Sequence record: OZ195776.1
Strand: one strand, 5' to 3'
Length of the DNA: 64,000 nt
Part shown: positions 37,932 to 60,743 of the stretch, piece by piece
Numbering within the stretch: position 1 is the stretch's first letter
Layout of the letters: every line of letters begins with the position of its first letter
Translations under genes and position numbers: made by a program
The notes under the pieces: generated by a model
Database searches by the model: none
The model's input: only the letters and a program-made list of their open reading frames with translations
What the model was told of the DNA's origin: nothing

Positions 37932-37944
37932 CACTTTTACCTTT

Positions 37945-39213: not shown

Positions 39214-39221
39214 GAATTCTC

Positions 39222-43670: not shown

Positions 43671-43892
43671 TTACGCCATTGCTTTTTTAAACAAGACGGC
43701 AATGGTAGCAATGGTAGCAAGTACAGGACCAAGCAATACAAGCGTGAACAGCGTGCATACTTCGACATGCTTGTCTGTGCACTTAGGATTTTCTTTACGG
43801 AAAGCGACGATTTCTTCGTGATTCATCATGCGCTCACGGAAAGCAACGTAAAGCATAAGGCCAAGTACAACGTAAATCAGTGTTAGGATCAT
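43671..43892 (-). CDS. Small membrane protein (two TM segments)
   Basis: Two hydrophobic stretches; ATGA overlap with the upstream gene. Confidence 0.6.
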   Translation of the reverse strand: MILTLIYVVLGLMLYVAFRERMMNHEEIVAFRKENPKCTDKHVEVCTLFTLVLLGPVLATIATIAVLFKKAMA

Positions 43893-46883: not shown

Positions 46884-47390
46884 TTACTCCACAAGTTTGG
46901 TGTAATAATGAACTTTTTTGCAAGGCTCAATAGAGGAGCCTGGATATACATATCGTCGTTCAGTTACTCCCAAATTATGAAAGCCGTTTTTCGCGAATAA
47001 GTTCTGCGAACGCGTATTATGCGGCAATATTGTTGCGAAGACAACTGCCAATCCCAATTCTTTTGCAAATTGTTCTGCGTGTTTGATTACCAAAGAACCG
47101 TAACCTTTACCCCAGAACGCACTTCCCATGCTCAACCCAACTTCCATCGTTGCTCCACGAGGAGTGAACGTAGCGAACCCAATTGCTTGATCCGATTCTT
47201 CTTCAATGATGATAAAGCGGTAAAAATCACCCAGTTCGATGTTGTTTCGTGCGTTTTTAAGCACTCTGAGAATCATTTCGTGTGATTTCACTGGAGTCGA
47301 TGAAAGCATCTTCCACATTACATCGTCCGTAGCCCAGTTTTCAAATAACTGCTGAACGCGGTTGTCGTCCGGTTCGATCATATGAATCAT
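46884..47390 (-). CDS. GNAT acetyltransferase (RimJ/RimL-like)
   Basis: EVGLSMGSAFWGKGYGS acetyl-CoA motif, NTRSQNLFAKNGF. Confidence 0.85.
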   Translation of the reverse strand: MIHMIEPDDNRVQQLFENWATDDVMWKMLSSTPVKSHEMILRVLKNARNNIELGDFYRFIIIEEESDQAIGFATFTPRGATMEVGLSMGSAFWGKGYGSLVIKHAEQFAKELGLAVVFATILPHNTRSQNLFAKNGFHNLGVTERRYVYPGSSIEPCKKVHYYTKLVE

Positions 47391-48214
47391 TAGTGGCCCC
47401 ACTTCTCATTAAATTTTGCTTCTGCGTCACGACGCAAAATTTCGCGACGGACTGAACGGATTTTGTAGCATTGGTCTGTAACCAATGAGTTCCAGTTACG
47501 TTCCCACTTGCGCGCATCTTTGATGCCAGCTTTCTTAGCATCGAGGATTTTGGCAATAGTACCGTCAAATTCTGCGCGCTGAGCGTTGTATGCTTCCATG
47601 AACGCTGATTCGTTATACTCACCCAGCTTCGTTAGTTTAGCGGTAAGAACATCTTTGACTTCGAATGCGTCTTTGTGAGCCATACGGTTACCACCATCAC
47701 ACAGCGAGCTCCAACCCATAAACTGACCGAAGTGTTTGTTGGTCTTGATATCAACCATACGATCGAACTCAGCTTGTTCTTTTTCCAATTCTTCTTGGGC
47801 AGCTTTGTCCGCAGCAGCTTTTGCAGCAAGACGTGATTCTGAGTTTTGGAACTCGTGCAGGTTACGGTTCAGCGCTTTGACGGTATTTTTGTCAGACATG
47901 ATGCACGAATTTACAGCGTCAGATACACGAGACATGTCGAAGTAAACGCGTTTACTTGAGTTGTTAAATTCAAGCACGTAAACTTGTTCGTTGCGAAGTA
48001 CCGACTCTTCTACCTTGGTGTTAAAGAAACCACCTTGACACGAACCTGGACGAACGATTTCAGCAAGATTTAGCGCAATTGGTTGGGCTTGCCATTCGCG
48101 GTAACCGTCATACGATGCAGACAGTCCGTTGAAAGATGCTGATGCGTTGTCAAGTGCGAAAGCGCCAGATGAAGCAGTAGATAGTAGTAGAGCTGCGATG
48201 ATAGACTTTTTCAT
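47390..48214 (-). CDS. Secreted/periplasmic protein with Sec signal peptide
   Basis: MKKSIIAALLLSTASSGAFA signal peptide with A-F-A cleavage site. Confidence 0.75.
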   Translation of the reverse strand: MKKSIIAALLLSTASSGAFALDNASASFNGLSASYDGYREWQAQPIALNLAEIVRPGSCQGGFFNTKVEESVLRNEQVYVLEFNNSSKRVYFDMSRVSDAVNSCIMSDKNTVKALNRNLHEFQNSESRLAAKAAADKAAQEELEKEQAEFDRMVDIKTNKHFGQFMGWSSLCDGGNRMAHKDAFEVKDVLTAKLTKLGEYNESAFMEAYNAQRAEFDGTIAKILDAKKAGIKDARKWERNWNSLVTDQCYKIRSVRREILRRDAEAKFNEKWGH

Positions 48215-48534: not shown

Positions 48535-48582
48535 ACTGCAGATACAAAAAAACCGCCTTTTGGCGGTTTAATTTAAAACGAA

Positions 48583-49028: not shown

Positions 49029-49523
49029 TTATTTGTCGTATTTTGTTTCGTCGAACTTGCCAAGACCGTACGAGCCATCATAAGCGTGGCCAGTATCAGC
49101 TTCTGTTAGCACAAATTGTGCTAGACGAGTACCAGGTTTGGTAATCATCATTCCCTGCGTTACGTGCAGACAACCTGCAACATAACCATTAAACCCACTG
49201 TCGTACAGACCGCTTGTTACAAAGCAAGCATTGCGGTTTAGCGTGCTACGTTGGATTAACCAACCAGCTTCACCTTCTGCAATTTGAACCTTGTGATCAA
49301 ACAACACGTCGTATCGACCTGGTGGTAGACGAATGAAGCCGTCTTCACCTGGGATAATTTCTTTACCACCGCGGTGCTCTTTCATGTCTTCCGTAATAAC
49401 GAAAGGAGCATCTGAGATTGTGAAAACCTTAGCCAAACGTACGTCGTACGCATTTGGTTGGATATGGTCTTCAACGATGTTTGTGATTGTGCTCTTAGAA
49501 GAGTCTGTTGCGATGTTAATCAT
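49029..49523 (-). CDS. Trimeric dUTPase/dCTP deaminase family protein
   Basis: IQPNAYDVRL, QRSTLNRN, GLYDSGFNG, GTRLAQ. Confidence 0.88.
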   Translation of the reverse strand: MINIATDSSKSTITNIVEDHIQPNAYDVRLAKVFTISDAPFVITEDMKEHRGGKEIIPGEDGFIRLPPGRYDVLFDHKVQIAEGEAGWLIQRSTLNRNACFVTSGLYDSGFNGYVAGCLHVTQGMMITKPGTRLAQFVLTEADTGHAYDGSYGLGKFDETKYDK

Positions 49524-50061
49524 TGATGTTTGCCTTTATGTATTCGTCAATATCGCCGTCGTAGATGCCGTTGACCAAGTTGATCAATTCACGACGGAAG
49601 TGCCAATCGTGGCTGTTTTTAACCTTGAAGTCCGGTTCGAAAGGAATTGTTTCGCTTTCGTGACCATCAGATTCGGTTTTGTCTGATAGAACCTGAATAA
49701 CGATTACATCTTCTTCTTCTTTGCAGAACTTGTATTCATTCTCAAAGCGTAAATCAGTAATCACGACAGGTTGTATCATTTTACGTTTCACTTCCTCAAC
49801 GAAGAAGTTGACGTTTGCACGACGAGCAAACATACCAGTGTTTCTTACGATGTCGCGACCGTCAATTTCACGACCTCGAATCTCATGAATGGAACGTTTG
49901 AACACGTCATACTCAGCAGTGCCAGTAAGCTGGTACGTTTCGCAGATTTCTTCACGAATTGGATCTGCGAAAGCTACCATGCGATGCCCGAAGGCATCGC
50001 TAATGATTTGTCCAGCGTAATCTTTGCCACTGCCTCTATATCCACAGATAGCAATATGCAT
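49516..50061 (-). CDS. Deoxynucleoside monophosphate kinase (gp1-like)
   Basis: IAICGYRGSGKD P-loop, AFADPIR, VITDLRFENE, HESE. Confidence 0.9.
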   Translation of the reverse strand: MHIAICGYRGSGKDYAGQIISDAFGHRMVAFADPIREEICETYQLTGTAEYDVFKRSIHEIRGREIDGRDIVRNTGMFARRANVNFFVEEVKRKMIQPVVITDLRFENEYKFCKEEEDVIVIQVLSDKTESDGHESETIPFEPDFKVKNSHDWHFRRELINLVNGIYDGDIDEYIKANIND

Positions 50062-50918
50062 TATTTCACCATTTTATCAATGAAAGCAATGTTTTGTTTA
50101 GCGAGCTCAACGTCGCCACCAGCGAAGTCAAAGTCAACTTCTTTTTCAAACTTACCGTCGATCAGACCAGTTGGAGTCTCGTCGTAAGCAACGCCGTTTA
50201 GACCTGCCCAAGGAGCTGATGATGTATCCCAAGAACGAATCGCCCATTGGAAGTTTTTAACAAGCTCGATTTCACGAGGACCATCAAGCATACCCAAGAA
50301 GTGAAGACGTTTCGTTGCACGACCATCTAAGATACCACGTTCTTGTAGTAAGTTCATCATGCGCCAGCGAGCAAGGAAGCGCTGTAGTTTGTTGTCTTTC
50401 TCGATGCCACCAAATGCGTTTGGAACACCTAGAATACTGATACCGATAACATCAATGTCTTCGTTATCTAAAGCCCATTCGATTGATTGGATGTAACCTT
50501 CCAAATCACCGATTTCAGATTGTGGTACGTAGAACGTATCAAAACCTGCTTCTTTGAACTGAGGAATCTGTTTGATTGCCATGTCACGTGTCTTTTCCCA
50601 AGGCTCTGCTGGGTAATCCGAAAGAACAATACAGTCAGCATTAACGCGTTTGCCCATTTCGATTAGACGTTCTGGTTGGTACATGACACCACCGTTGTGT
50701 TTTACCATTTCAAATGCGCTGTTGTCCATCATTACGTATTTGCCGTCGTCAAGATCACGGTAGTAATCTGTGTACGCTTGGTTGTACATAACACCGACAT
50801 TGAACGTTGGATCGATTAGATGCGCAAGGATCAAGTGAGAACCGTTTGTTTTGGTTAGTTCTTCTAGGTGCGGAGTTGGTACGATGTGGCAAAAGTTGAT
50901 AGAAGTTGTGAAATCCAT
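50061..50918 (-). CDS. dpdA: TGT-fold DNA guanine transglycosylase (DpdA-like)
   Basis: TIM-barrel TGT-type motifs MDNSAFE, VLSD, VPQ, IGIS, LHFLG, SWDTSS; no Zn-binding CxCxxC; near QueD-like and folE genes. Confidence 0.7.
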   Translation of the reverse strand: MDFTTSINFCHIVPTPHLEELTKTNGSHLILAHLIDPTFNVGVMYNQAYTDYYRDLDDGKYVMMDNSAFEMVKHNGGVMYQPERLIEMGKRVNADCIVLSDYPAEPWEKTRDMAIKQIPQFKEAGFDTFYVPQSEIGDLEGYIQSIEWALDNEDIDVIGISILGVPNAFGGIEKDNKLQRFLARWRMMNLLQERGILDGRATKRLHFLGMLDGPREIELVKNFQWAIRSWDTSSAPWAGLNGVAYDETPTGLIDGKFEKEVDFDFAGGDVELAKQNIAFIDKMVK

Positions 50919-50996
50919 GTTTTATTCCTCAAGTGGTTCATTCAAATTAGTATACACATTTGTGTAGAAAAATAAAGCCGCAATTGCGGCTTTTTC

Positions 50997-51200
50997 TTAG
51001 TAACCTGCTACGTCGTCGATTGCTTGATTAAAATCGTTCATGTAGTGGTGACCAAATTTTTTGACAAACTCTTTCTTCATCTTATCGATGTCCATGTCAG
51101 AGTTTTCTAGTTTGTCAACTGCCCAGTCGTAAGCTGCCATTGATGCAGCGCCGTTACGTTCAGTTATTTTGCTTTCGCTAAATTGCTCGAATGTTTTCAT
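50997..51200 (-). CDS. Small putative internal head protein
   Basis: MKTFEQFSE leader; CATAAGTA late promoter at 51235-51242. Confidence 0.65.
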   Translation of the reverse strand: MKTFEQFSESKITERNGAASMAAYDWAVDKLENSDMDIDKMKKEFVKKFGHHYMNDFNQAIDDVAGY

Positions 51201-51237
51201 TTGCGTGGTTCCTTTTGTATTAATGAATTCTTTTTAC

Positions 51238-51612
51238 TTATGAGAACTCTACAATGGCACCATTTTCAGCATCTTCGTTAACTTCAACTTTCCACCAACG
51301 ACCTTCAGCACCCCAAATGTCGTTCAGATGTTCGATGATGTTCATACCAAACTGCTCACATGACATTCGACCCAAATCTCGTGGAAGTGTGCTTAGATAT
51401 GCATCCAGTGTACGACGGAGTTGTATGAATTCGATGTCTCGATCATCGTGAAAGACGTTTGTTTCTACACGAAAGCCAAAAATATGACGATGTGGGTGCG
51501 CCAAGAACGATACATCCAAATCGCTCCCATCGCATAGCTCTGGGATGGTAGCGGATTCTGGAAAGTTGTGAATAAATTCACGAGAAGTTGTAACAAATAC
51601 CGAAGTCTTCAT
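51238..51612 (-). CDS. QueD-like T-fold protein (6-pyruvoyl-tetrahydropterin synthase family paralogue)
   Basis: FIH, HPHRHIF, DRDIEFI, MSCE, VEVNEDAENGA match the QueD/PTPS pattern. Confidence 0.75.
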   Translation of the reverse strand: MKTSVFVTTSREFIHNFPESATIPELCDGSDLDVSFLAHPHRHIFGFRVETNVFHDDRDIEFIQLRRTLDAYLSTLPRDLGRMSCEQFGMNIIEHLNDIWGAEGRWWKVEVNEDAENGAIVEFS

Positions 51613-51664
51613 AAAGAGTCCTTATAAATAACAATAAACTGCATATCCCATTTTGGAACATACT

Positions 51665-52342
51665 ATGAAAAAATACCACTATACCTACAAAACTACCATA
51701 TGTCACCCATCTAAAGGAGATTTAATTTACGTCGGTAAGCACTCGACGGATAATCTCGACGACGGATATCTTGGTTCTGGTAAGATATTACTCGCTATGA
51801 TAGCCAAATACGGCAGAGACATAGCCAGTCTGGAAGTTGCTGATATGCATTTAACTGAAAGTGCTGCGTACGAAGCAGAATGTCAGTTGATATCAGAAAC
51901 CGTACAATCATACCCAAATACCTGTTTGAATTTAACTGGGTTTGGTGGTCGTTACGATTATAATCCAGACAAACCATACGAAAGACAACCATTTCAACAC
52001 GATGAAGCTGCCAAAGCAAAAATGAGTAAGAGTCGCTTTGGAAAAAAGCAAAGTACCGAAACAAAAGCTAAGCGAGCTGCGTCACACAGAGGCCGTAAAA
52101 ACACCACCGAAACCAAGCAAAAAATGCGCGAGTCTCGATTGAAAGTTGCTCAAACTCAAGAACACAAAGATTTAGTTAGCGGTGAAAATCACCCCAAGTT
52201 TAAAGGGTGGTATCACACTCCACTTGGAAAGTTTCCAAGTGCTAATCAAGCCGCAAAAGCCTACAATACCAAAACACAGTGTATTATTAACTGGTGCAAG
52301 ACGACGAGAAAGCCGGAGTTCTGGTTTGAGCCAAAGGGGTAG
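51665..52342 (+). mobile_element. Free-standing Seg-like GIY-YIG homing endonuclease with NUMOD3/NUMOD1-like motifs
   Basis: HYTYKTT...IYVGKHSTDNLDDGYLGSG, EAE..LI, CLNL; ETKAKRAASHRG and ETKQKMRES repeats; own TATAAATA at 51623; opposite strand to neighbours. Confidence 0.88.
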
Positions 52343-52918
52343 CTATAAAATTTTACCTATACAGAATACTTCTTCATCATAATGCTTTTGAATTGCATCA
52401 CGAAAGAAGAATACGTCATCCAATGATACGGGATAGAAGTGGTGACAGTCAACGCCAACATTCAATCCATTTCGTTTAAATTTCTGACCATGAACATGTC
52501 CGAACAAAGTGAACATTTCAAAGTCGCTGATGGAAGGTTCGTGAACTAACATGAAATCATCAAACACAGCTTTCATGTTGGCTTCGCCATCGCTGGTTGC
52601 TATCAAACTTTCTGCATCCGGATGAACGAAGCAGTAGCGCACAAAGCGATTATACACCGTTTTGAACGGTGATTTGTCATACTCGATATCTCGTTCGTAA
52701 TTGCCTTCAATTAGCGTTATATTGCCATTGAGGCGTTCTAAGACATCAAAGTTGCCAAAATCTCCAAGATGAAAAACTTCATCATCTGGTTTGACTTTAG
52801 CATTCCATCGATGAATCATTTCCTGATCCATTTGAGCTACATTATCAAATGGCCGCTTGCTCAAAGTCAACGTTCTTTCTGAACCAAAATGAGTATCGGA
52901 TGTAAACCACGTTGCCAT
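52343..52918 (-). CDS. Calcineurin-like metallophosphoesterase
   Basis: FTSDTHF, HLGDFG, GNYE, LVHEP, FGHVH, NVGVD. Confidence 0.9.
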   Translation of the reverse strand: MATWFTSDTHFGSERTLTLSKRPFDNVAQMDQEMIHRWNAKVKPDDEVFHLGDFGNFDVLERLNGNITLIEGNYERDIEYDKSPFKTVYNRFVRYCFVHPDAESLIATSDGEANMKAVFDDFMLVHEPSISDFEMFTLFGHVHGQKFKRNGLNVGVDCHHFYPVSLDDVFFFRDAIQKHYDEEVFCIGKIL

Positions 52919-52973
52919 AATATACCTTTGCATAAAAATAAAGCCGCTTTCGCGGCTTTTTCAATTGAATCGA

Positions 52974-53663
52974 TTACAGATTCGATAGGAACTCACGGCG
53001 AAGACCGCTATCCTTTTCTGCAAAACGACCACCGGAAGCAAGAGTAGTTGTTACAGACTGTTCGTCTTCAACGCCACGCATGCTAACGCAAGTATGTTTT
53101 GCACCCATATGAACGATTACATCGTCGGTACCCAGAATGTGTTTCAGAGCTTCGCAAATTTGCGATGTAAGACGCTCTTGTACTTGTGGGCGACGTGCAA
53201 AATATTCAACGATGCGGTTCAGCTTGCTTAAACCAAGGACTTTGTCACCTGGAATGTACGCAATTGTACAACCAAAATCACGGTCACCGAAATCGCTAAA
53301 CGGCATTAGGTGATGCTCGCAAAGAGACTTCACTTTGATGTTTTTAACGAGAACGAACTCATCACCATGACTGAACTTGTTTTCAACAGTAGTACATTTA
53401 GGGAAATGATCCGGAGTTAGACCGCTCATTAGCTCTTTAACGTACATTTTTGCCACACGACGTGGTGTTTCAACAAGCGAGTCGTCAGCCAAATCCAGAC
53501 CAAGAGTTTCGAGTACTTGCGTCATCAGACCTTCAATCTTTTCGATTTTCTCTTCTGCTGGCACGTTTACCAAATCAGTAGTTGGAGTTTGGATACCAAG
53601 CTCAAGTAGACGAGCTTCAACTGATTTACCTAGTTCTGCATTTGCTTTTGACTTATCAAACAT
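52974..53663 (-). CDS. folE: GTP cyclohydrolase I
   Basis: ETPRRVAKMY, SLCEHHLMPF, LGLSKLNRIV, RPQVQERLT, HTCVSMRGV. Confidence 0.97.
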   Translation of the reverse strand: MFDKSKANAELGKSVEARLLELGIQTPTTDLVNVPAEEKIEKIEGLMTQVLETLGLDLADDSLVETPRRVAKMYVKELMSGLTPDHFPKCTTVENKFSHGDEFVLVKNIKVKSLCEHHLMPFSDFGDRDFGCTIAYIPGDKVLGLSKLNRIVEYFARRPQVQERLTSQICEALKHILGTDDVIVHMGAKHTCVSMRGVEDEQSVTTTLASGGRFAEKDSGLRREFLSNL

Positions 53664-53689
53664 AAATTTTACCTTTCGACTTTATTATC

Positions 53690-53767
53690 CAGACCAAAAA
53701 GGACAAGGGGTCTGTCACCTTGGACTATCTCAACTCAGATAGCTAGGGAAGCATATCACCACTTCCC
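53690..53767 (-). promoter_or_regulatory. Structured 5' leader of folE: two hairpins and an H-type pseudoknot
   Basis: GGGAAG/CTTCCC, CTATCT/AGATAG, CAAGG/CCTTG with loop CAGACC complementary to downstream GGTCTG. Confidence 0.55.
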
Positions 53768-53791
53768 ATAATTGTAAACGTATTTATTAAT

Positions 53792-54472
53792 TTAAAACGG
53801 CCAGTCATCATCCAATACTTCGAAGTATGGTGCTGCTGAAATCGTACCCTCGATTCGAAAAATCGAACGGTCTGGGTTACGGACCGCAACATTACGCGAT
53901 GGCGTCGTTGCAGCTCGCTGATCCGTAATATCATCACGGAACGGGCCAGTATCAACAACACCATGCACCAATATTGCACTTTTGCTACCGAGTTCTTTTG
54001 CGTCAGCATCAAACTGAGTAAATTGATTGAATCTGTCGCTAGGTTTGTTAAATTCTTTTACGAATTCAGGGCGTAGCTTAACACCAGTAATAGTACCGTC
54101 AGGACCAGCATACGTCGCCGCTTGGTGGATGTTTTCTGTTAGAAACGTTGCATAGCCATCTCGACTGCGCATTCCATAATCACCTCGCGTACCACGATAC
54201 CAAATCGCGCCACCTACTAAACGTGCAGCTTCTCGTTTCAAACCTGTTCTCCAAACGCTCTCTAAATCAGCAATTGCCTTTTTGACCGCAGATGGAGCAT
54301 CGTCTGTATCGTAACCGTTCATGAACAGTTCCCATGTAAAATCATTGTAATTGCTCGGAGAGACGGATTTAACGATTTTAACACGAGACTGATCATCCGT
54401 TGCTGCTATGAATTCTGCTACAGCTCTTTCAACTGCTACAGATTCCCATAGATGTTCATTGAATGATTTCAT
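53792..54472 (-). CDS. Putative packaged ADP-ribosyltransferase-like protein
   Basis: Leader MKSFNEHLWE; WYRGT, FLTENIHQAATYAG, ILVHGVVD pattern; GATAAATA at 54498-54505. Confidence 0.55.
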   Translation of the reverse strand: MKSFNEHLWESVAVERAVAEFIAATDDQSRVKIVKSVSPSNYNDFTWELFMNGYDTDDAPSAVKKAIADLESVWRTGLKREAARLVGGAIWYRGTRGDYGMRSRDGYATFLTENIHQAATYAGPDGTITGVKLRPEFVKEFNKPSDRFNQFTQFDADAKELGSKSAILVHGVVDTGPFRDDITDQRAATTPSRNVAVRNPDRSIFRIEGTISAAPYFEVLDDDWPF

Positions 54473-54503
54473 TGTAATTTCCAATGTAGAAAACTACTAT
54501 TTA

Positions 54504-54887
54504 TCAAGAAACCGTTTCTAACACAACGTGTTTGACTTTGGTTACCTTATGGACCTTGGCGATCGCAAATTGCTCATCGCTTTTAGCAGCCCACTCAGTT
54601 GCCAATTTTTCAGCTTCCGCAAGAGACAAGTCGCTCGCTTCTACATCAGCGTTATCGATGTTAAGAACACACCAAACTTGACGTTCTGGTTTGACGACCT
54701 TAGTCGATTCCAGCATGTTCTCTGCGATTGTCGCCGAACGATTGTCATCGGTTTTCACACGATACCGTTGGGATTCCCAATTGAATCCCTTTGCTTTCAC
54801 CGCTACTACGTATCCGTAACAGCCCGCACAAGGCGATTGGCTGTTTTCGGAAACACGCACACGCTCTTTCATTTTAAATCGAGCCAT
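54504..54887 (-). CDS. Hypothetical protein with N-terminal KOW/SH3-like barrel
   Basis: FKMKERVRV...G.VVAV...YRVK...I.E..LE. Confidence 0.6.
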   Translation of the reverse strand: MARFKMKERVRVSENSQSPCAGCYGYVVAVKAKGFNWESQRYRVKTDDNRSATIAENMLESTKVVKPERQVWCVLNIDNADVEASDLSLAEAEKLATEWAAKSDEQFAIAKVHKVTKVKHVVLETVS

Positions 54888-55906
54888 CAGAATTCACCAT
54901 CTAGGATGTCCATCCAATAATGACGAACGGTGTTAACACAAAGATTACCAAATGGCTTTTTAAGCACTTTCCAGTCATCCTTGTGGATAGGAACTTCGTC
55001 ACGTTCATCGCGTTCGAACTCGGCTTTAGCATCTTGGATTAGAAGACCTTGCAGCATGCCAAATTGCTTTTGGTTCACTGTACCGATTTTAGATAGAACG
55101 TTACGGAGACGAGCTTCGGTCACGTAAAGAGACAATTCGCTGTACAGTTTCTCTTGTTCTTCTGTTAGAACAATCGGAGCTGCAGGAGCTTTGGTATCTT
55201 TACCTTTCTTTTCTTTGAACTTTTCGCTCTTCACTTTGATACACGCTCGTGCACCATGAGGGAGCAATTGTTCTTTGTGAAGCTGCTTGATTACGAAACC
55301 TTCTGACACATTGTCTTCGGTTTGCGGACCAAGTTTAGTCACGAATTCAGGGCTGATTGCAAGCAAATCGTCCAGAGTACCAGTTGCAAGTTCCGGCACG
55401 GTTGGGATGTCGCTCATTAGGCAGTAGCTTTGAACGATAGGCCATTCCAGCCAAAACTCTTGAGCTCCGCGGATGACTTTGATGTCGTATGCGATGAAAT
55501 CTTTCTCACCGTATTTGACTTCTTTTTGGATGCCATCGCCAAACAACTCACCGTAAGTGATTGTAACGTCACCAGATTCGATGATGCCAGCATCCCACAG
55601 ACGATCGTTTAGGAAACGAATCTTGTCAGCGTAGTCTTCAACCACGTCGGTACAACCATAGAAGTCGTAATCGCCAACCGCGTTGGCACCGATGGTGCTG
55701 CTACGTTTAGCTGGAGTTACACGAAGATCGCCAACTTCTGTTTTGTCAGGCTCAGCAATGAAGCTAAAGTTAGCACCATGAACCTTCTCTGTCGCTACCC
55801 AGTCTTTAACACCGAGCATAGAACAGTAGTTTACAAACTTTTGACGGTAACCGTTTTCAAGAGATGTGAATTTACGAAAGAATTTAGACACCGATGTATT
55901 CCTCAT
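54887..55906 (-). CDS. rnlB: RNA ligase 2 (Rnl2 family)
   Basis: WVATEKVHGANFSF, YGELFG, FIAYDI, SEGFVIK, IKVKSEKFKE, YVTEARLRNVLSKIG. Confidence 0.95.
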   Translation of the reverse strand: MRNTSVSKFFRKFTSLENGYRQKFVNYCSMLGVKDWVATEKVHGANFSFIAEPDKTEVGDLRVTPAKRSSTIGANAVGDYDFYGCTDVVEDYADKIRFLNDRLWDAGIIESGDVTITYGELFGDGIQKEVKYGEKDFIAYDIKVIRGAQEFWLEWPIVQSYCLMSDIPTVPELATGTLDDLLAISPEFVTKLGPQTEDNVSEGFVIKQLHKEQLLPHGARACIKVKSEKFKEKKGKDTKAPAAPIVLTEEQEKLYSELSLYVTEARLRNVLSKIGTVNQKQFGMLQGLLIQDAKAEFERDERDEVPIHKDDWKVLKKPFGNLCVNTVRHYWMDILDGEF

Positions 55907-56195
55907 TATTAGCGTTGTCGATTGCAGTTTGAATTGCAGTCCATATTAAGTGTGAATTCAGAGAATGGACGATTCCAGATTCTGATTCAACAAATGCACG
56001 ATACGTCGTGTTCTTGTAGTTTACGTCAGTGTAATAACGAGCTACTAGAACGTCCGCATCAATTACGATGACTTGGTCGTTGTCAAGCAAGTATGCTTCT
56101 GACCCATCACCATCGTTACAATATTCCATCGTAACTGTTGACAGTGGGTTGATTGCCAGTTCTTCTAACTGGTTACGTATTTTGATTGGAGTCAT
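55884..56195 (-). CDS. Hypothetical protein
   Basis: 103 aa in an operon with overlaps. Confidence 0.6.
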   Translation of the reverse strand: MTPIKIRNQLEELAINPLSTVTMEYCNDGDGSEAYLLDNDQVIVIDADVLVARYYTDVNYKNTTYRAFVESESGIVHSLNSHLIWTAIQTAIDNANNEEYIGV

Positions 56196-56524
56196 AATTT
56201 AGCTCTCTCAGTGTCGATGTATTTCTCGAGTTCGGCGAGCACAACGCTCAGTTTGAATCGATAATTGATTGGCTTGACGGCTTCACGCGTGTCAGTACCA
56301 TGAATTTTTTGAGATTTGATGGCAACACCATCTTTGTCGTCCATCATACAACCAGTATTGTCTGATTGACGGAACAACTCTATTGCAATCACTTTTGGTA
56401 GACTCGATACCGTCGCTGCAGAAATTACACTAACCGGATGAGTCAGCTCACGTTTGAGCCACATCTCATACTTTCGTTCTAGATCGTCCAGAACACGAGT
56501 CATTACTTCACTGCGAATGCCCAT
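56192..56524 (-). CDS. Hypothetical protein
   Basis: 110 aa, GGAG RBS. Confidence 0.65.
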   Translation of the reverse strand: MGIRSEVMTRVLDDLERKYEMWLKRELTHPVSVISAATVSSLPKVIAIELFRQSDNTGCMMDDKDGVAIKSQKIHGTDTREAVKPINYRFKLSVVLAELEKYIDTERAKL

Positions 56525-56532
56525 ACGTACTC

Positions 56533-56721
56533 CTATTTCATTAGTTGTTGCGTTGCGTAACGGTAAAGCGCATCACGAGTTTTCTCAGTGATTTGCTCCA
56601 TCTTGAAACACTCATCAGCATTACGACGAATAACGTCATAACGTTCTTGGCAAGGCCAGTGAGCGATTTCTTTAGGAGTAAGGTTACACGCTTTTTTAAA
56701 AGAAGCAACGGTTAATTTCAT
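56533..56721 (-). CDS. Small early hypothetical protein (start at MKLTV)
   Basis: Directly behind family A cassette copy 2. Confidence 0.65.
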   Translation of the reverse strand: MKLTVASFKKACNLTPKEIAHWPCQERYDVIRRNADECFKMEQITEKTRDALYRYATQQLMK

Positions 56722-56735
56722 AATGTTTTCCTGAA

Positions 56736-56796
56736 TTCTTAATGACCGTTCCCGGCCGACAGAGCCCATATTACAGATCTGAGTAGAAATGGCAAC
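56736..56796 (-). repeat. Early promoter/stem-loop cassette, family A copy 2
   Basis: GTTGCC-N17-TAATAT; 41 bp identical to 34885-34925. Confidence 0.9.
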
Positions 56797-56826
56797 ACTA
56801 AATAACAGAAAAATGAGGAAAGAATA

Positions 56827-57336
56827 ATGCCAAAGCAATTACGACAATCACAAATGACCGAAGTACGCAACGAACTAACCATGAACCAACTTGGTAAGTG
56901 TTTGTTGTGCGACACGCCATTATCACAAGAGAAACGCACTCCTCATGTAGACCACGATCACCAATTCGGAAACGTTCGAGGAATCCTTTGCGCAGCTTGT
57001 AACACATACGAGGGTGTGGTTCATCACAAATTCGAACGAAGTGGGTTGAAAGGACGTGGCGTTGATTACACAACTTGGTTGCGCCGTCTTGCGGATTATC
57101 TTGAAGATGATTACACCGACAACGACTTCCATCCTCAGCATCCGAAAGATCAGACGAAAATCTTCGGTAAAATGCGTTTAAACGAGATGAAAGAGCATCT
57201 GACGAGCGTTGGCATTACTTTTCCTGAAAACGCTAAGAAGGCGGATTTAGAGAAGATTTACCGCAAGAGTTTCTTGCACAATCCACGCTGTGATTTTGAT
57301 AACGGCAAGTATGACAGCGGCAATAAAGCCGAATAA
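56827..57336 (+). CDS. 49: Recombination endonuclease VII (gp49)
   Basis: CLLC, HVDHDH, VRGILCAACN..EG, Y...L..L..YL..D, HP. Confidence 0.93.
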   Translation: MPKQLRQSQMTEVRNELTMNQLGKCLLCDTPLSQEKRTPHVDHDHQFGNVRGILCAACNTYEGVVHHKFERSGLKGRGVDYTTWLRRLADYLEDDYTDNDFHPQHPKDQTKIFGKMRLNEMKEHLTSVGITFPENAKKADLEKIYRKSFLHNPRCDFDNGKYDSGNKAE

Positions 57337-57351
57337 CATGAGAGAAATGAA

Positions 57352-57576
57352 ATGGACAATCAACACAAGAAAATCAAAGGCTATCGCGACCTATCTCAAG
57401 CTGAAATTGATGGTATGAATGCCGTCAAAGCAGAAGGTGAGCGTCTAAAGCAAATGATTGCTGATTTACGTGAGCAAGAAACAATCGATGAGCGTTGGGT
57501 AGCAATTGCTGAGACTCATCTACAGCAAGGTATTATGGCAGCAGTTCGCTCCATCGCCAAACCAGAATCATTCTGA
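57352..57576 (+). CDS. acb2: Anti-CBASS protein Acb2 homologue (cyclic oligonucleotide sponge)
   Basis: MDNQHKKIKGYRDLSQAEIDGMNAVK...RWVAIAETHLQQGIMAAVRSIAKPESF closely matches the recalled Acb2/T4 Vs.4 family sequence. Confidence 0.9.
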   Translation: MDNQHKKIKGYRDLSQAEIDGMNAVKAEGERLKQMIADLREQETIDERWVAIAETHLQQGIMAAVRSIAKPESF

Positions 57577-57579
57577 TAC

Positions 57580-57611
57580 AAAAAAAGCCGCTAATGCGGC
57601 TTTTTCTTTAT
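57580..57611. terminator. Bidirectional terminator, identical to 32130-32161
   Basis: GCCGC-TAAT-GCGGC flanked by A and T tracts, between convergent genes. Confidence 0.85.
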
Positions 57612-57916
57612 AGATTTGATGGATCGAAGGTTCCTTCGAACTCCGGCAGAGTTTCAATTCGAATCTCACCCCACGGCTCGTTACGACCATCGGTTCCAGA
57701 TTTAATTTCAACTATCGTCCAACCAGCTTCTTGTAGCAATGATTTGATCACTGCTTCGTCAGATGGGCTGAAACGCTGATAGAACATCATTGTTCCTGAT
57801 AGCGAAGTCATTTTATCTAAACGCGTGTTTAGTTGTTCAATCCATTTGAGACGCTGCTCGTTAGATTGGCGTTCAAGTCGGTCAGATACGTTTCTTGGGG
57901 TGCGAATTTGGCTCAT
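57608..57916 (-). CDS. Hypothetical protein
   Basis: 102 aa, ATGA overlap with the upstream gene. Confidence 0.6.
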   Translation of the reverse strand: MSQIRTPRNVSDRLERQSNEQRLKWIEQLNTRLDKMTSLSGTMMFYQRFSPSDEAVIKSLLQEAGWTIVEIKSGTDGRNEPWGEIRIETLPEFEGTFDPSNL

Positions 57917-58281
57917 AGTCGGATTTCAACTCCATTCATAATACAAGTTAGTGTAGTGACAAACTCAAGGCCACTTGTTACTTCACGATGACGTTTTTCC
58001 ATTTCGGTAACGTCTTCTGCAGACATAAAGTCGGCAAGATGTTCGATTAGGTGGTCGCTACCGGTGCATTCGTGCCAAGCACGTAGACCGTCTTCCAAAT
58101 ACTCGTAAACAGCAAGTTCTGCTTGAGTTTCTGAGTGCTTACCATCCAATTCGTAGAAATACATACTCAATTCATGATTGATTTGGTTTTCGTACTTCTC
58201 ATACATGCCATCATCCAGCCAAACCATTTGACTTTCAGTTTGATTACTGTAGTAACCACATGCAGACATTTCAATAAACAT
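57913..58281 (-). CDS. Acidic hypothetical protein
   Basis: 122 aa, GGAG RBS nearby. Confidence 0.6.
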   Translation of the reverse strand: MFIEMSACGYYSNQTESQMVWLDDGMYEKYENQINHELSMYFYELDGKHSETQAELAVYEYLEDGLRAWHECTGSDHLIEHLADFMSAEDVTEMEKRHREVTSGLEFVTTLTCIMNGVEIRL

Positions 58282-58329
58282 GACAATTGCTCCAATTAAG
58301 AAAAAAGCGGCATAATGCCGCTTTTAGAA

Positions 58330-58713
58330 TTACTTCGCTGCGCGTTTTTGCTTGCGCGTTTTGTTAGGCTTGCGACCTTTTGATGCAGCATTGTCACGAC
58401 GAACCTTCGCTTGAAGTTCGCGAACTTCTTTCGGTTGATGCATCGCTTCGTTCAGACCAGCTTTAGCAAGTTTGGTCAACTGCTTGAACTCTTTCGCTGG
58501 GCGAGTTAGACGACCCGCTTGACGACTCGCTTTTACACGACCAGAGTAGTTGCTGCCTTTTAGCTTCTGCAGAGAAGCGATTGCCTGACCATCGTCTGGC
58601 TGTACCTTGATGTGACGCTCAAGCTTCGCGACCTTATTGGTCAGTGCGCGGTTGTCGCCTTTGTAACGTGCGTAGCAACCTTTTTGAGAAGCAGATGTAG
58701 TTTTCTTAGCCAT
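58330..58713 (-). CDS. Highly basic hypothetical protein
   Basis: Lys/Arg-rich; GAAAGGT RBS. Confidence 0.7.
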   Translation of the reverse strand: MAKKTTSASQKGCYARYKGDNRALTNKVAKLERHIKVQPDDGQAIASLQKLKGSNYSGRVKASRQAGRLTRPAKEFKQLTKLAKAGLNEAMHQPKEVRELQAKVRRDNAASKGRKPNKTRKQKRAAK

Positions 58714-58785
58714 GTTCAATTACCTTTCATTAAAATATATGATGCTCACAAGAGCGTTTTCAAGAATTGTTACTATACCAGAGTT

Positions 58786-59112
58786 TTACTCTGATTTATA
58801 CACTACAGCGATGTTTTTGTAGTGTGTATGTACCCATTTAACACGTTTAGTGTCGGTTTGTTCCATCTGACCAGCGATGATACGTGGATCTGGTACGTTC
58901 TTAATGTGACCTTGTGGCAACAGAACGATGTCCCCTACGCTTACGATGTCTTGGTCAACTTCACCACCAACTGAAATTACTTTGCCATGCAAAGGCACTT
59001 CACCTTGGTTAAGTGTACCTAAAACGATACCACCAGCGGATTTAAGTTCTTCACCTTCCGACTTGGCGTTGGTATCAATGATGACTTGTTCACCTTGAGC
59101 GTATGCTTTCAT
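58786..59112 (-). CDS. 31: GroES-like co-chaperonin (gp31)
   Basis: AQGEQVII, KSAGGIVLG mobile loop, GKVISVG, VGDIVLLP, HYKNI. Confidence 0.92.
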   Translation of the reverse strand: MKAYAQGEQVIIDTNAKSEGEELKSAGGIVLGTLNQGEVPLHGKVISVGGEVDQDIVSVGDIVLLPQGHIKNVPDPRIIAGQMEQTDTKRVKWVHTHYKNIAVVYKSE

Positions 59113-59312
59113 TCTTTGCTTCCATATTTTGCACGAGCTTCTTCAAATGCTGACGTGCGTTGTTTTACTGCTTTTTGTCGTTCTTCAAATTCACGACACT
59201 TACGACGTCTTGGTCCGTCTTCCACATCATAATCGATTGGATTGGAACCACGTTGGTCCCAACCAATCCAGTAATCAGTGAGTTCATCCAAGATTTCTTT
59301 AGAGCTTGCCAT
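59109..59312 (-). CDS. Small hypothetical protein
   Basis: 67 aa with overlaps at both ends. Confidence 0.55.
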   Translation of the reverse strand: MASSKEILDELTDYWIGWDQRGSNPIDYDVEDGPRRRKCREFEERQKAVKQRTSAFEEARAKYGSKE

Positions 59313-59565
59313 TCGGTACGATGCCTACGAACTTATCTGATTTAAACGAACGCCAACCTTTAGCATCAAAATCGTAATAACGAATTGTTTTGACGCCCTC
59401 GTGGTCTTCCGTAACCAGTCCATCCTGGACACCGCCTTTCGGCAATTTATCATCAGGTACGTAATCGATGTTACGGGTACCCAATGCGATTCGTTCAGAA
59501 CCATCGGCTTTCTTAAAAGAGAACTTAACGATAGAACCGTTTAACGCTTTAACAATGTCAATCAT
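59299..59565 (-). CDS. WYL_2/DUF2693-like protein (T4 gp31.1-like)
   Basis: VKFSFKKADGSERIALGTRN, YYDFDAKGWRSFK. Confidence 0.8.
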   Translation of the reverse strand: MIDIVKALNGSIVKFSFKKADGSERIALGTRNIDYVPDDKLPKGGVQDGLVTEDHEGVKTIRYYDFDAKGWRSFKSDKFVGIVPNGKL

Positions 59566-59605
59566 ATTACCACCAATATAAGGCCGGTTAAACCGGCCAT
59601 TTCAA

Positions 59606-60505
59606 TTAAAGTTCTACAATTGCGCCTTTCGACAAACCTTCCGATACCCATAGACGAGTAGCGCCAAGCTCACGAAGACGGTCGCCAAACTCACGCTCAA
59701 CAGCGCTTGCTAGGTTTTCGATTGTAGTTTCGTGTGGGAACACTGTAACTTTCGAAGTTGTTTCCATGCGGAAGTTACCGCGTAGTGAACGATATGCGAT
59801 AACCAAGTTTGGATCTTCTACCGTTACGTTTTCGTTCCAAGCAAAGATGCCTTGATAGAAATCAGCGATTTCTTGTAGCAATGCAGTTGCTTCTACGTCA
59901 GTTGCGATGAACGAACGATGGCCATGAGCAATGTTTTGACAACCGTAGCTCGTGCTCGAACGTAGACCGTGAACGTATTTGAATGTTGTGTGCGAAACTA
60001 CTGCTTTTGGCAAGAAGAAGTTGCTGCACAAATCAACTACCACTTTAGTTACTGGATAACCAAGAGCGATTAGTTCACGTTTTAGCATATCTTCGATGTA
60101 TGCCTTTAGATGAGCATGGTATTGCTCTTCTTCTGTTGCATCTTCCGCTGCGATACCGTTCATTGGAATTACTTGATACCAATCATCAACCGATGCAACT
60201 ACTGATGTGGTCGATGTGTCAAGTGCAACACGGTCACGGTCTTTAACATCTTGCATACCGTATATACCAAAGCCGTCAACAACAACCATACGGTGGTCAA
60301 TTGCGTGCTCGCTATCATCGATCAGTTTTTTGATTTCTTTCTTACAACCAGAAAAGTCGATTACAACCTGCTCTTGAGCATCAACTTCACCAGCGATTTC
60401 ACATGACAGTGTTAACGACTCGCCGATTAGATTACCGTTTTTACCTAACCAACAATGATCGATTACTGAAATATCGCCGACGTACATGTTTGCTGTTTGA
60501 ATCAT
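59606..60505 (-). CDS. queD: Two-domain 6-carboxy-tetrahydropterin synthase (QueD2-type)
   Basis: ISVIDH.W...GES, VIDFSGCKKEIK, IDHRMVV, YVHGLR...GCQNIAHGHRS, TTIENLA; resembles the long gammaproteobacterial QueD. Confidence 0.85.
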   Translation of the reverse strand: MIQTANMYVGDISVIDHCWLGKNGNLIGESLTLSCEIAGEVDAQEQVVIDFSGCKKEIKKLIDDSEHAIDHRMVVVDGFGIYGMQDVKDRDRVALDTSTTSVVASVDDWYQVIPMNGIAAEDATEEEQYHAHLKAYIEDMLKRELIALGYPVTKVVVDLCSNFFLPKAVVSHTTFKYVHGLRSSTSYGCQNIAHGHRSFIATDVEATALLQEIADFYQGIFAWNENVTVEDPNLVIAYRSLRGNFRMETTSKVTVFPHETTIENLASAVEREFGDRLRELGATRLWVSEGLSKGAIVEL

Positions 60506-60506
60506 T

Positions 60507-60743
60507 TTAAACCCTTTCATATTCATTTGATTGTAACCAGATTTGGAACTCTTCGATCCAAACTTGGTCGCTTGTTGCGTGAAGTTTTACTTCTATTGGA
60601 AGTGTACCGTACTTAGCGGCTGCTTTTAAAGCTCGAATCGCATATAAACTTTCCATAATGGATTGTTCTGCCAATTCATCTTCACTTTCTATTTGGTCGA
60701 CTATTGCCTCAGGCTTTAGTCTGACAACGATAAAAGTACTCAT
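60507..60743 (-). CDS. Hypothetical protein (start at MSTF)
   Basis: 78 aa between dCMP deaminase and queD. Confidence 0.5.
   Translation of the reverse strand: MSTFIVVRLKPEAIVDQIESEDELAEQSIMESLYAIRALKAAAKYGTLPIEVKLHATSDQVWIEEFQIWLQSNEYERV

Follow-up and report, generated by a model that had tools for sequence, protein, structure and literature searches.

The locus analysed here raises two related questions: which 7-deazaguanine base the phage would place in its DNA, and whether guanine would be exchanged in the finished DNA or on the free nucleotide. The window corresponds, at 100% identity, to the opening 64 kb of the genome of the T4-like Vibrio phage D479 (OZ195776.1). All four genes named in a preliminary description of the window are minus-strand ORFs and annotated CDSs (VPHD479_0064, 0066, 0069 and 0084); being long ORFs with homologues that number from hundreds into thousands, they cannot be chance features. 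The central reading of that description, a 7-deazaguanine genome-modification system, is supported, and we hold it to be very likely that the D479 genes form a 7-deazaguanine DNA system. As the whole explanation we favour phiST-type 7-deazaguanine DNA hypermodification with exchange at the nucleotide level, which we consider reasonably probable.

A TGT-fold enzyme without a zinc site

For the product of the gene at 50061..50918 (minus strand; VPHD479_0064, 285 aa), previously described as a divergent TGT-fold enzyme lacking the zinc motif, Pfam and NCBIfam searches found no family. Its AlphaFold model (pLDDT 93.1) has as top Foldseek matches in the PDB the TGT of Z. mobilis and DpdA 7UI4 (E about 1e-7, probability 1.0, TMq 0.54-0.59); the TGT fold, on which the earlier reading depended, is recovered in the model. 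Among the viral models of BFVD the best match is phiST M4SLA5 (E 1.6e-13, TM 0.75/0.82), with nt-1 DpdA2 reaching a TM of only 0.46. Profile comparison by hhalign agrees, aligning the protein with phiST gp042 (DpdA3) over 247 columns (98.4% probability, E 5e-15) at an identity of only 24%; plain tblastn over the phage collection gave no connection between the two proteins, and hhalign against E. coli Tgt and against nt-1 DpdA2 was not significant. As judged from the model and the profiles, the product is a TGT-fold enzyme related to phiST DpdA3, and the DpdA earlier called atypical is indeed zinc-less, with phiST DpdA3 as its closest relative.

With bacterial DpdA (S. Montevideo, 7UI4) and tRNA-guanine transglycosylases the D479 protein shares the TIM-barrel TGT fold and three invariant aspartates at comparable positions: in a D-x3-F motif (cf. 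Asp95/Phe99), in the middle of the barrel, and late, after an L-G motif (PMC10164549). The invariant residues D65, D101 and D231 would be equivalent to the catalytic aspartates of TGT/DpdA by motif spacing and strand ends, not by residue-level superposition. The differences are that the protein has neither the CXCX2CX22H zinc site nor a Pfam TGT match, that it is shorter than bacterial DpdA (285 vs 413 aa), and that D479 has no DpdB partner. When the zinc-binding Cys and His residues were sought, Cys10 and Cys95 proved to be the sole cysteines, neither Cys nor His was present beyond Asp231, and no Cys was invariant in a 28-sequence alignment.

The DpdL homologue

The small separate QueD-like T-fold protein of the preliminary description is encoded at 51238..51612 (minus strand; VPHD479_0066, 124 aa). 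A Pfam search gave no match, and the structure model (pLDDT 95.5) confirms a beta-beta-alpha-alpha-beta-beta T-fold, with E. coli QueD as the best PDB match (TM 0.70). The protein contains L-AHP-HRH-I-F, that is, the published DpdL signature LxxxHRHxF (PMC10516641), which is kept in eight of nine aligned homologues; H41, R42 and H43 are invariant (n = 30 sequences). In tblastn it matched phiST, phi13:1 and phi19:2 (E 2e-8) and ACP17 (E 1e-18). Signature, tblastn and model together identify a DpdL homologue, a QueD-paralogous T-fold protein and predicted CDG decarboxylase. This activity of DpdL is a published proposal, and no dDG was produced in E. coli when DpdL was expressed together with its cognate DpdA (PMC10516641).

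Between the DpdL and DpdA3-like genes there is a 67-aa ORF (50997..51200, minus strand; VPHD479_0065), an uncertain member of the system. BLASTP gave it weak similarity to gene 070 of RHph_I1_18 and to the 65-aa ORF that occupies the corresponding place in metagenomic cassette L015 (E 3e-7).

Genes for the precursor

FolE (52974..53663, minus strand; VPHD479_0069, 229 aa) is canonical: it matches Pfam GTP_cyclohydroI (E 5e-57) and the NCBIfam FolE equivalog (258.8 bits; cut-off 202), and is 66% identical to the Bakedbeans FolE and 53% to that of nt-1. The long QueD (59606..60526, minus strand, alternative start 60505; VPHD479_0084, 306 aa) is, as described earlier, a two-module protein, with PTPS/QueD matches in both halves (residues 28-75, Pfam, 29.7 bits, cut-off 22.4; residues 176-286, PHROG QueD-like). 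Position 60505, previously given as the end of the gene, is the internal Met8, and since relatives align from residues 7-12, either start is possible. The protein is 47-49% identical to the QueD of nt-1 (VPFG_00168), KVP40, VH7D and others over 96-98% of the length; a long two-domain QueD is normal, not unusual, in nt-1/KVP40-type phages. Its C-terminal half carries GCQNIAHGH, that is, C-x4-HGH where the canonical motif is C-x3-HGH, which counts against the assigned role.

In agreement with the earlier statement, none of QueE, QueC and QueF is in the window. Elsewhere in the D479 genome there are a QueC-like ORF at 153.7 kb and a QueE-like gene at 189067-189969, whose product matches five NCBIfam QueE models (best E 5e-14) and has three invariant Cys that align with those of phiST QueE.

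The adjoining kinase and DCD-like genes

The span 50061-60505 assigned to the system in the preliminary description was incomplete, leaving out two genes of the same unit that are the most informative part for the mechanism. A dNMP kinase of the T4 gp1 type (49516..50061, minus strand; VPHD479_0063, 181 aa) is identified by Pfam DNMK (36.3 bits; cut-off 27.1) and PHROG 139 (E 1e-29), and the D479 genome has no other DNMK match. Next to it lies the gene for a protein of the dCTP-deaminase/dUTPase superfamily (49029..49523, minus strand; VPHD479_0062, 164 aa), with Pfam matches to DCD (E 1e-12) and dUTPase (E 2e-4) and 'probable dUTPase' 9w59 as the best PDB sequence match (E 5e-9); it is distinct from the ordinary D479 dUTPase at 126.4 kb. 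The kinase start overlaps the DpdA3-like stop by 1 nt (ATGA), and the kinase and DCD-like genes overlap by 8 nt; both are translationally coupled, downstream of the DpdA3-like gene. A terminator-like scan (consensus match only) placed a GC-rich hairpin with a T-run at 50974..50993 (minus strand), just upstream of the DpdA3-like gene; this hairpin and another at 48550-48569 bracket the DpdA3-like, kinase and DCD-like genes and a 142-aa ORF.

Conservation of the cassette

Gene order was derived from 80 IMG/VR loci, with per-gene counts on 72-76 of them. The common order is QueE-like, PTPS, FolE/FolE2, DpdL, DpdA3-like, kinase, DCD-like, and the part from DpdL through DpdA3-like and kinase (T4 gp1-type or DUF3310) to DCD-like is essentially invariant. 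Of 76 loci, 75 have DpdL upstream of the DpdA3-like gene; the DCD-like gene is no more than 1.6 kb downstream of the latter in 72 of 72 loci with enough flank. Immediately behind the DpdA3-like gene comes a kinase-type gene in 74 of 75 loci (DNMK, n = 41; DUF3310, n = 33), the remaining locus having the DCD-like gene first and then DNMK. T7 gp1.7, whose Pfam domain is DUF3310, is annotated as a nucleotide kinase; the short DUF3310 proteins correspond to no more than its C-terminal domain and are presumed to have kinase activity. In RHph_I1_18 and in five of ten long representatives DUF3310 is fused to the C-terminus of the DpdA3-like protein.

At least 504 IMG/VR loci contain the cassette, as do three further cultured phages, among them the T4-like Aeromonas phage Ahp1_CNU-2021 (Straboviridae). 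Among 50,697 phage records searched by tblastn, the DCD-like family was limited to four phages, those with the DpdA3-like gene. Given this distribution, and since descriptions of DpdA3 and DpdL date from 2023 (Cui, Hutinet et al., NAR 2023; PMC10516641), the term "new variant" used earlier is too strong; D479 adds a new member to an already published kind of system.

Comparison with phiST and nt-1

Cellulophaga phage phiST, which encodes FolE, QueD, QueE, DpdL and DpdA3 but lacks QueC, has its dG wholly replaced by dDG (PMC10516641). D479 has the same enzyme set, and both phages are without canonical QueC; in common are also the fold and sequence of the DpdA3-like protein (hhalign 98.4%, TM 0.75-0.82), a DpdL with LxxxHRHxF, and a dNTP pyrophosphatase-type and a kinase-type gene in the cassette. 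The latter are, however, MazG and an AAA_18 protein in phiST, and a DCD/dUTPase-fold protein and a T4 gp1-type kinase in D479. D479 further differs in being T4-like, phiST belonging to Cbastvirus, in having a QueD of the long form of the nt-1/KVP40 lineage, and in its scattered genes, with QueD 9 kb and QueE 139 kb away.

The preQ0/dG+ system of Vibrio phage nt-1 and Schizotequatrovirus comprises FolE, long QueD, QueE, QueC and DpdA2 (PMC6884629, PMC12028318). Both nt-1 and D479 are T4-like Vibrio phages with orthologous long QueD (48%) and FolE (53%), and the flanks (gp31, endonuclease VII, RNA ligase) are syntenic in D479. In contrast to nt-1, D479 has DpdL, DpdA3-like, kinase and DCD-like genes, and no match to nt-1 DpdA2 or nt-1 QueC was detectable in it. 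The presence of the former and the absence of the latter point to a phiST-type (dDG) system; hence the earlier preference for a dDG/CDG type over the preQ0 type of nt-1 holds, the extra QueD paralogue being a DpdL homologue with the exact published signature. In nt-1 about 0.1% of G is modified (PMC6884629), in DpdA3 phages all G (PMC10516641).

Product and level of exchange

By homology, FolE would convert GTP to dihydroneopterin triphosphate, the long QueD would form CPH4, and the divergent QueE (189 kb) would yield 7-carboxy-7-deazaguanine (CDG), which the DpdL homologue, a predicted decarboxylase, would turn into 7-deazaguanine (DG). The DpdA3-like zinc-less TGT-fold enzyme would swap guanine for the deazapurine at the glycosidic bond, and virion DNA is predicted to contain 2'-deoxy-7-deazaguanosine (dDG) for much or all dG. 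We regard DG as the probable final base; if so, dDG in place of dG would blunt restriction enzymes.

For the exchange, we propose that the DCD-like protein is a dGTP-clearing, dGMP-supplying pyrophosphatase. It would hydrolyse dGTP to dGMP, on which the DpdA3-like enzyme would then exchange the base; the neighbouring dNMP kinase would begin rephosphorylation toward dDGTP, and the phage polymerase would incorporate dDGTP into DNA. T4 gp1 accepts dGMP. We see about an even chance that the exchange takes place on the deoxyguanosine nucleotide and not on finished DNA; if true, the base would be swapped on free nucleotides prior to replication, contrary to the currently assumed exchange in finished DNA. 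T4 gp56 dCTPase/gp42/gp1 and S-2L DatZ/MazZ/PurZ follow the same logic of dNTP hydrolase, monophosphate enzyme and dNMP kinase, and the D479 kinase belongs to the T4 gp1 family. To our knowledge, the complete base replacements described so far (T4 hmC, S-2L Z) all have a dNTPase and a kinase upstream of the polymerase. The central enzyme of D479, by contrast, would be a transglycosylase that exchanges bases, a step without precedent on nucleotides, the activities being predicted; we know of no TGT-superfamily enzyme with a mononucleotide substrate.

The nucleotide-level route is suggested by several observations: a kinase and a dNTP-hydrolase-type protein invariably accompany the enzyme; in cultured phages the DCD-like family occurs only with the DpdA3-like gene; the gp1.7 domain DUF3310 is fused to some DpdA3-like proteins; the phiST cassette has non-homologous equivalents, MazG and the kinase-like AAA_18 protein; and the three D479 genes overlap and are flanked by two hairpins. 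Moreover, replacement of dG is complete in DpdA3 phages, whereas with DpdA1, DpdA2 and DpdA4 it does not exceed 30% (PMC10516641), and DpdL with DpdA yielded no dDG in E. coli.

With the same genes and product, the DpdA3-like enzyme might instead be a DNA transglycosylase acting after replication (on DG, or on CDG decarboxylated later), the kinase and DCD-like genes being ordinary metabolic neighbours; we consider this possible but doubtful. The substrate of all characterised TGT/DpdA relatives is a polynucleotide, with which they form a covalent Asp-ribose intermediate (PMC10164549), insertion after replication is the proposal of the DpdA3 authors themselves (PMC10516641), there is a strong structural match to DpdA 7UI4, and, as T4-like genomes cluster nucleotide-metabolism genes, the linkage could be partly historical. 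Such an enzyme would, however, leave unexplained a dNTP-hydrolase-type protein in 72 of 72 and a nucleotide kinase in 75 of 75 loci, the filling of the same slot by three unrelated kinase-type families, one of them fused to the enzyme, and the restriction of the DCD-like family to DpdA3-like genes. Nor do we know of a precedent for complete replacement through post-replicative exchange. The D479 enzyme also lacks the zinc-pinned insertion, which makes up about 30% of bacterial DpdA (PMC10164549).

The inserted base could also be another 7-deazaguanine: CDG, should DpdL not act as a decarboxylase, or ADG/preQ0, since D479 encodes a QueC-like protein. We find this unlikely, as the DpdL and DpdA3-like genes are closely linked and dDG is the base in the only chemically analysed phages with DpdL and DpdA3; still, the role of DpdL is a predicted one, its heterologous expression gave no dDG, and ADG occurs in Campylobacter DpdA3 phages (PMC10516641). 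The QueC-like ORF matches Pfam QueC with its C-terminal part (32.8 bits) and has a CxxCxxC-type, QueC-like C-terminal Cys motif, but its near-intact PP-loop (SGIDS) is one residue short, tblastn found no similarity to nt-1 QueC, and the gene sits apart from the cassette, among radical-SAM genes in a cluster that is conserved in KVP40-type phages.

It is highly improbable that the genes serve RNA or cofactors, that is, queuosine or archaeosine-like tRNA modification, or folate/biopterin supply. FolE and PTPS-family enzymes do also feed the folate and biopterin pathways, and D479 encodes DHFR, ThyA, a FolD-like enzyme and roughly 30 tRNAs; however, the TGT-fold protein has neither the zinc subdomain nor tRNA-binding extensions, and its nearest characterised relative comes from phages with fully modified DNA. 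Furthermore, the cassette includes QueE and DpdL, neither of which has a role in folate synthesis, and it is joined to the dNMP kinase and the dNTPase-type protein, with replication genes adjoining.

Source phage and synthesis genes

The window is 100% identical to positions 1-64000 of the genome of Vibrio phage D479 (OZ195776.1, 257,764 bp; isolate from a mix of seawater and oyster), which, judging from its gene content, is a T4-like myovirus. The four open reading frames named in the preliminary description are all present on the minus strand: a protein ascribed to the tRNA-guanine transglycosylase (TGT) fold (50061-50918, 285 aa), a small QueD-like protein (51238-51612, 124 aa), FolE (52974-53663) and a long QueD (59606-60526, 306 aa). 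In the GenBank annotation FolE is named, and the other three are hypothetical proteins.

The identity of FolE is unambiguous, given the Pfam match (E 5e-57) and NCBIfam equivalog matches above the cut-off (NF006824, 258.8 bits vs. 202; TIGR00063, 209.3 vs. 181.6). The long QueD is indeed a two-domain protein, with PTPS/QueD-like matches in both halves (PTPS being the Pfam family containing QueD; 29.7 bits, cut-off 22.4), and it is the full-length orthologue of QueD from nt-1, KVP40, VH7D and related phages (47-49% identity). The PHROG QueD-like match falls on its C-terminal half, where the motif is C-QNIA-HGH, that is, C-x4-HGH with one residue more than C-x3-HGH; the same is observed in the nt-1 orthologue.

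The search for queE and queC, proposed earlier, was extended to the whole genome. A gene at 189067-189969, outside the window, encodes a QueE-like protein of 300 aa. The top five NCBIfam matches of this protein are QueE models without exception, the best having E 5e-14, all below the cut-offs; it contains the QueE N-terminal motif, the invariant C35, C39 and C82 of the radical-SAM three-Cys motif, aligned to the cysteines of QueE from Cellulophaga phage phiST, and a 42-residue insertion. For queC the outcome was mixed: there is a QueC-like paralogue at 153.7 kb, and no canonical QueC of the nt-1 type, as tblastn of D479 with nt-1 QueC, and likewise with nt-1 DpdA2, found nothing. The annotated QueC-like gene has a QueC match in the C-terminal part only and a PP-loop-like SGIDS motif. 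It was rejected as a member of the module, being part of another conserved cluster and unrelated to nt-1 QueC by tblastn, though it may have some role. Hence, the D479 set comprises FolE, QueD, QueE, DpdL (described below) and the DpdA3-like protein, without canonical QueC.

The cluster containing the QueC-like gene (152.8-159.5 kb, outside the window; 32823-39523 in the D479 piece L004) encodes, besides this protein with SGIDS and a C-terminal Cys motif, two enzymes of the radical-SAM/SPASM type, two proteins without an assigned function and an NAPRTase-like protein that looks truncated; the calls for genes 0262, 0263 and 0264 run into each other, with overlaps of up to 135 nt. The cluster is retained in KVP40-type phages, where its genes are annotated as queC_1 and queE_1, and it may represent a separate, uncharacterised modification pathway.

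The DpdA3-like protein

The 285-aa protein belongs to no Pfam or NCBIfam family; it has no match to Pfam TGT (PF01702), and TgtA is reached with E 0.13 at best. Sequence comparison with PDB chains, by single query as well as by profile, yielded only noise, so that comparison of folds was needed. The structural model, built with 28 homologues (pLDDT 93), was matched by Foldseek in the PDB to tRNA-guanine transglycosylases and the DNA preQ0 insertase DpdA (7UI4), with E about 1e-7 and probability 1.0. The fold ascribed to the protein is thus borne out, the model being a TGT-like TIM-barrel. The closest named viral model is phiST M4SLA5 (E 1.6e-13, TM 0.75/0.82), whereas DpdA2 of nt-1 is much more distant (TM 0.46), as are the DpdA1 proteins of actinophages. 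Sequence comparisons point to the same relative, phiST gp042 (CGPG_00065), the founding member of DpdA3 (PMC10516641): alignment of the family profile with hhalign gives 98.4% probability and E 5e-15 over 247 columns, that is, the full length, and BLASTP gives E 2e-10 in a small database. The family is large: it makes up 1,527 clusters when grouped at 90% identity and, at 50% identity with hits of E up to 1e-3 admitted, 1,844.

Three aspartates, D65 (in DNSAFE), D101 (SDYP) and D231 (SWDSS), are invariant in the alignment of 28 sequences, as is H206-x-L-G, and in the hhalign alignment each of the three corresponds to an Asp of phiST DpdA3. The spacing D65-x3-F69 is the same as that of DpdA Asp95/Phe99. 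Based on spacing and on positions at strand ends, these residues are putatively the active-site aspartates of TGTs (acid/base, base recognition, nucleophile). Aligned with hhalign, the family profile had no significant match to either nt-1 DpdA2 or Escherichia coli Tgt, and hence no residue-level mapping to them; a weak, non-significant Tgt alignment, which we do not rely upon, places SDYP on the Tgt 'FDEC' segment.

The zinc site CXCX2CX22H, conserved in DpdA and TGTs (PMC10164549), is missing, as the preliminary description had claimed: there is no Cys or His past D231, the only two Cys are found in the N-terminal part, both before residue 100, and the alignment of 28 sequences has no conserved Cys column. 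Net charge and pI were dropped as a proxy for DNA binding, since acidity does not discriminate here: the median pI of the family is 5.0, and nt-1 DpdA2 is acidic as well (pI 5.8). Overall, every feature of the DpdA3 subfamily that could be tested is found in D479, and those of canonical DpdA and TGT proteins, the zinc site and the Pfam TGT match, are absent from the 285-aa protein.

The DpdL homologue

The small QueD-like protein was modelled with pLDDT 95.5 and does have a T-fold, E. coli QueD being the closest structure (TM 0.70). We identify it as a DpdL homologue. Residues 37-45, LAHPHRHIF, exactly match the DpdL signature LxxxHRHxF, which takes the place of the QueD motif CxxxHGH (PMC10516641), and the signature is kept in homologues. 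A tblastn search with this protein hits DpdL of Acidovorax phage ACP17 (E 1e-18) as well as that of phiST, phi13:1 and phi19:2 (E 2e-8), with coverage of 97-98%. DpdL is predicted to be a decarboxylase converting 7-carboxy-7-deazaguanine (CDG) to 7-deazaguanine (DG) (PMC10516641).

In Vibrio phage Bakedbeans the DpdL homologue, 64% identical to that of D479, makes up the last 125 residues of gp176 (1111-2262 in locus L011), a protein annotated with 383 aa; either the two parts are fused, or the gene call extends too far. The ACP17 cassette contains two large genes adjoining DpdL that are not DpdA3-like, and gave no information on the kinase and dNTPase discussed below. One of the two, directly upstream of DpdL, encodes gp124 (4966-5994 in locus L102), which has weak similarity to glycosyltransferases (GT1/GT4, E about 3e-4); the end product of this DpdL lineage may be different, possibly glycosylated.

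Comparison with known systems

Phage phiST has the same gene set as D479, FolE, QueD, QueE, DpdL and a DpdA3-type protein without canonical QueC, and dG in its DNA is wholly replaced by 2'-deoxy-7-deazaguanosine (dDG) (PMC10516641). The D479 clade is distinct and very large, with 24% identity to phiST DpdA3. D479 and nt-1 share the flanking order of long QueD, gp31, endonuclease VII, RNA ligase and FolE, but the DpdA2-QueC pair of nt-1 is missing in D479, where the DpdL/DpdA3-like module follows FolE instead. The suggestion that D479 may carry a new variant therefore goes too far: the system has every testable defining feature of the DpdA3/DpdL kind, which was described in 2023, and belongs to it. 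What is new here is the comparative evidence on how such systems may function, together with the wide spread of the cassette in uncultured T4-like phages.

A conserved cassette with kinase and dCTP-deaminase-like genes

Directly 3' of the DpdA3-like gene there are two genes overlooked in the preliminary description, both on the minus strand. The first encodes a T4 gp1-type dNMP kinase (DNMK; 49516-50061), its start overlapping the DpdA3-like stop by 1 nt, and the second, which shares 8 nt with the kinase gene, encodes a protein of the dCTP-deaminase/dUTPase superfamily (DCD-like; 49029-49523), which is not the ordinary dUTPase of D479. Hairpins followed by T-runs, identified by consensus match only, immediately precede the DpdA3-like gene and follow a small ORF located after the DCD-like gene. 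Each component of the module is single-copy in D479.

Among cultured phages, the DpdA3-like protein was found in three others only, Aeromonas phage Ahp1_CNU-2021, Vibrio phage Bakedbeans and Rhizobium phage RHph_I1_18, and among 50,697 records the DCD-like protein occurs in exactly these four phages, D479 included. We then scanned four long metagenomic contigs and 80 IMG/VR loci with profiles built from the module proteins, and observed the same order throughout: QueE-like, PTPS, FolE or FolE2, DpdL, DpdA3-like, DNMK or DUF3310, DCD-like. Among loci with sufficient flanks, DpdL is upstream of the DpdA3-like gene in 75 of 76, and the DCD-like gene is downstream in all 72. The slot after the DpdA3-like gene (n = 75) is occupied by DNMK in 41 loci and by DUF3310 in 33, the remaining locus having the DCD-like gene and then DNMK. 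DUF3310 (PF11753) is the domain of T7 gp1.7 (E 4.5e-23), whose annotation is nucleotide kinase; in RHph_I1_18, and likewise in five of the ten long family representatives, the DpdA3-like protein has this domain fused at its C-terminus. The cassette is present in at least 504 IMG/VR loci.

Other features of the cassettes are variable. In about one in nine, FolE2 (PF02649, GCHY-1) replaces type I FolE in the same position, a non-orthologous displacement (IMG/VR and ENA loci L015, L028, L030, L050, L065, L067, L081, L092, L101). Some have a small phosphoribosyltransferase gene (PF00156) between the QueE-like and PTPS genes (2835-3314 in L017; 1521-2006 in L018); no homologue was found in D479. 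Its product could convert the deazapurine base to a ribonucleotide, an alternative entry at the nucleotide level. Most metagenomic cassettes, and RHph_I1_18 too, encode a further conserved protein, 'post300' (about 300 aa, no Pfam match; 12016-12870 in L013 and equivalents), between the DCD-like gene and that of the gp45 clamp. D479 lacks this protein, which could be a part of the module or a mere syntenic neighbour.

phiST is an unrelated type of virus, and yet its DpdL and DpdA3 are flanked by the pyrophosphohydrolase MazG and by a kinase-like protein of the AAA_18 type. For Campylobacter phage CP220, a third DpdA3 lineage, the scan covered the first 50 kb of the genome, where QueE alone matched the profiles. 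This phage, fully dADG-substituted, has adjacent genes for a P-loop NTPase and a dUTPase-like protein (CPT_0006 and CPT_0007; 5407-6410 in locus L020), which do not match the DNMK and DCD profiles.

Possible routes of the base into DNA

The synthesis of CDG by FolE, QueD and QueE is established enzymology, and DpdL would then decarboxylate CDG to DG. For the next stage we considered two alternatives. In the published model, DpdA3 exchanges the base post-replicatively, in DNA. Alternatively, the exchange could occur on nucleotides: a dNTPase (the DCD-like protein; MazG in phiST) would turn dGTP into dGMP, both depleting the canonical triphosphate and supplying the substrate; the DpdA3-like enzyme would swap guanine for DG on dGMP; a dedicated kinase (T4 gp1-type, T7 gp1.7-type/DUF3310 or AAA_18-type) would start rephosphorylation; and the polymerase would incorporate dDGTP. 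Such a pathway parallels the synthesis of hmC in T4 and of Z in S-2L.

Gene linkage favours the nucleotide-level model, to which we give approximately even chances, over the post-replicative one, which is possible but less probable. Exchange on nucleotides would account for the dNTPase-type and kinase-type genes that invariably accompany the enzyme, for the non-orthologous fillers of both slots, for the fusion of a kinase-type domain to the enzyme itself, and for the loss of zinc-pinned insertion on the nucleic-acid side. On the other hand, no TGT-family enzyme is known to act on a mononucleotide, which counts against this model. It would also account for two published observations, namely, that 100% replacement is reached by DpdA3 phages only, and that co-expression of DpdL with the cognate DpdA in E. 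coli yields no dDG (PMC10516641). Under this model, DpdA3-type enzymes would be deoxyguanosine-nucleotide:7-deazaguanine transglycosylases at the core of a pre-replicative pathway, rather than DNA transglycosylases.

Since the order of DpdL, DpdA3-like, kinase and DCD-like genes hardly varies across the 80 IMG/VR loci, and the kinase-type proteins come from unrelated families, one of them fused to the enzyme, the question of how DpdA3 phages replace every G is reduced to simple enzyme assays, and so is the failure of DpdL with DpdA in E. coli. If the nucleotide route is true, it would be a new type of reaction for the TGT superfamily and an enzymatic route to 7-deaza-dGTP analogues, already useful in PCR and sequencing; and, as at least 504 IMG/VR loci have the cassette, complete substitution of the genome with 7-deazaguanine would be common in uncultured T4-like phages. 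D479 itself can be cultured, and as a T4-like Vibrio phage with predicted dDG it has close relatives, of the nt-1 and KVP40 types, that use low-level DpdA2/preQ0. Together they form a natural pair for comparing the benefit of full and trace 7-deazaguanine against restriction and other defences.

Neighbouring genes in D479

A Metallophos_2-type phosphoesterase gene (PHROG 547; 52343-52933, minus strand) is situated between FolE and DpdL. It was dropped as a member of the system, having no counterpart in any other cassette; D479 has further metallophosphoesterases at 43889-44629 and at 122287. Between the phosphoesterase gene and DpdL there is a homing-endonuclease gene on the plus strand (VPHD479_0067, 51653-52342), which separates FolE from the DpdL/DpdA3-like unit; other homing-type endonuclease genes are located at 67293 and 127158, and an HNH gene at 220058. 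Just 3' of the module, a 274-aa ORF (47390-48214, minus strand) encodes an exported phage protein, with an evident signal peptide at the N-terminus (MKKSIIAALLLSTASSGAFA) and a central part resembling a coiled coil.
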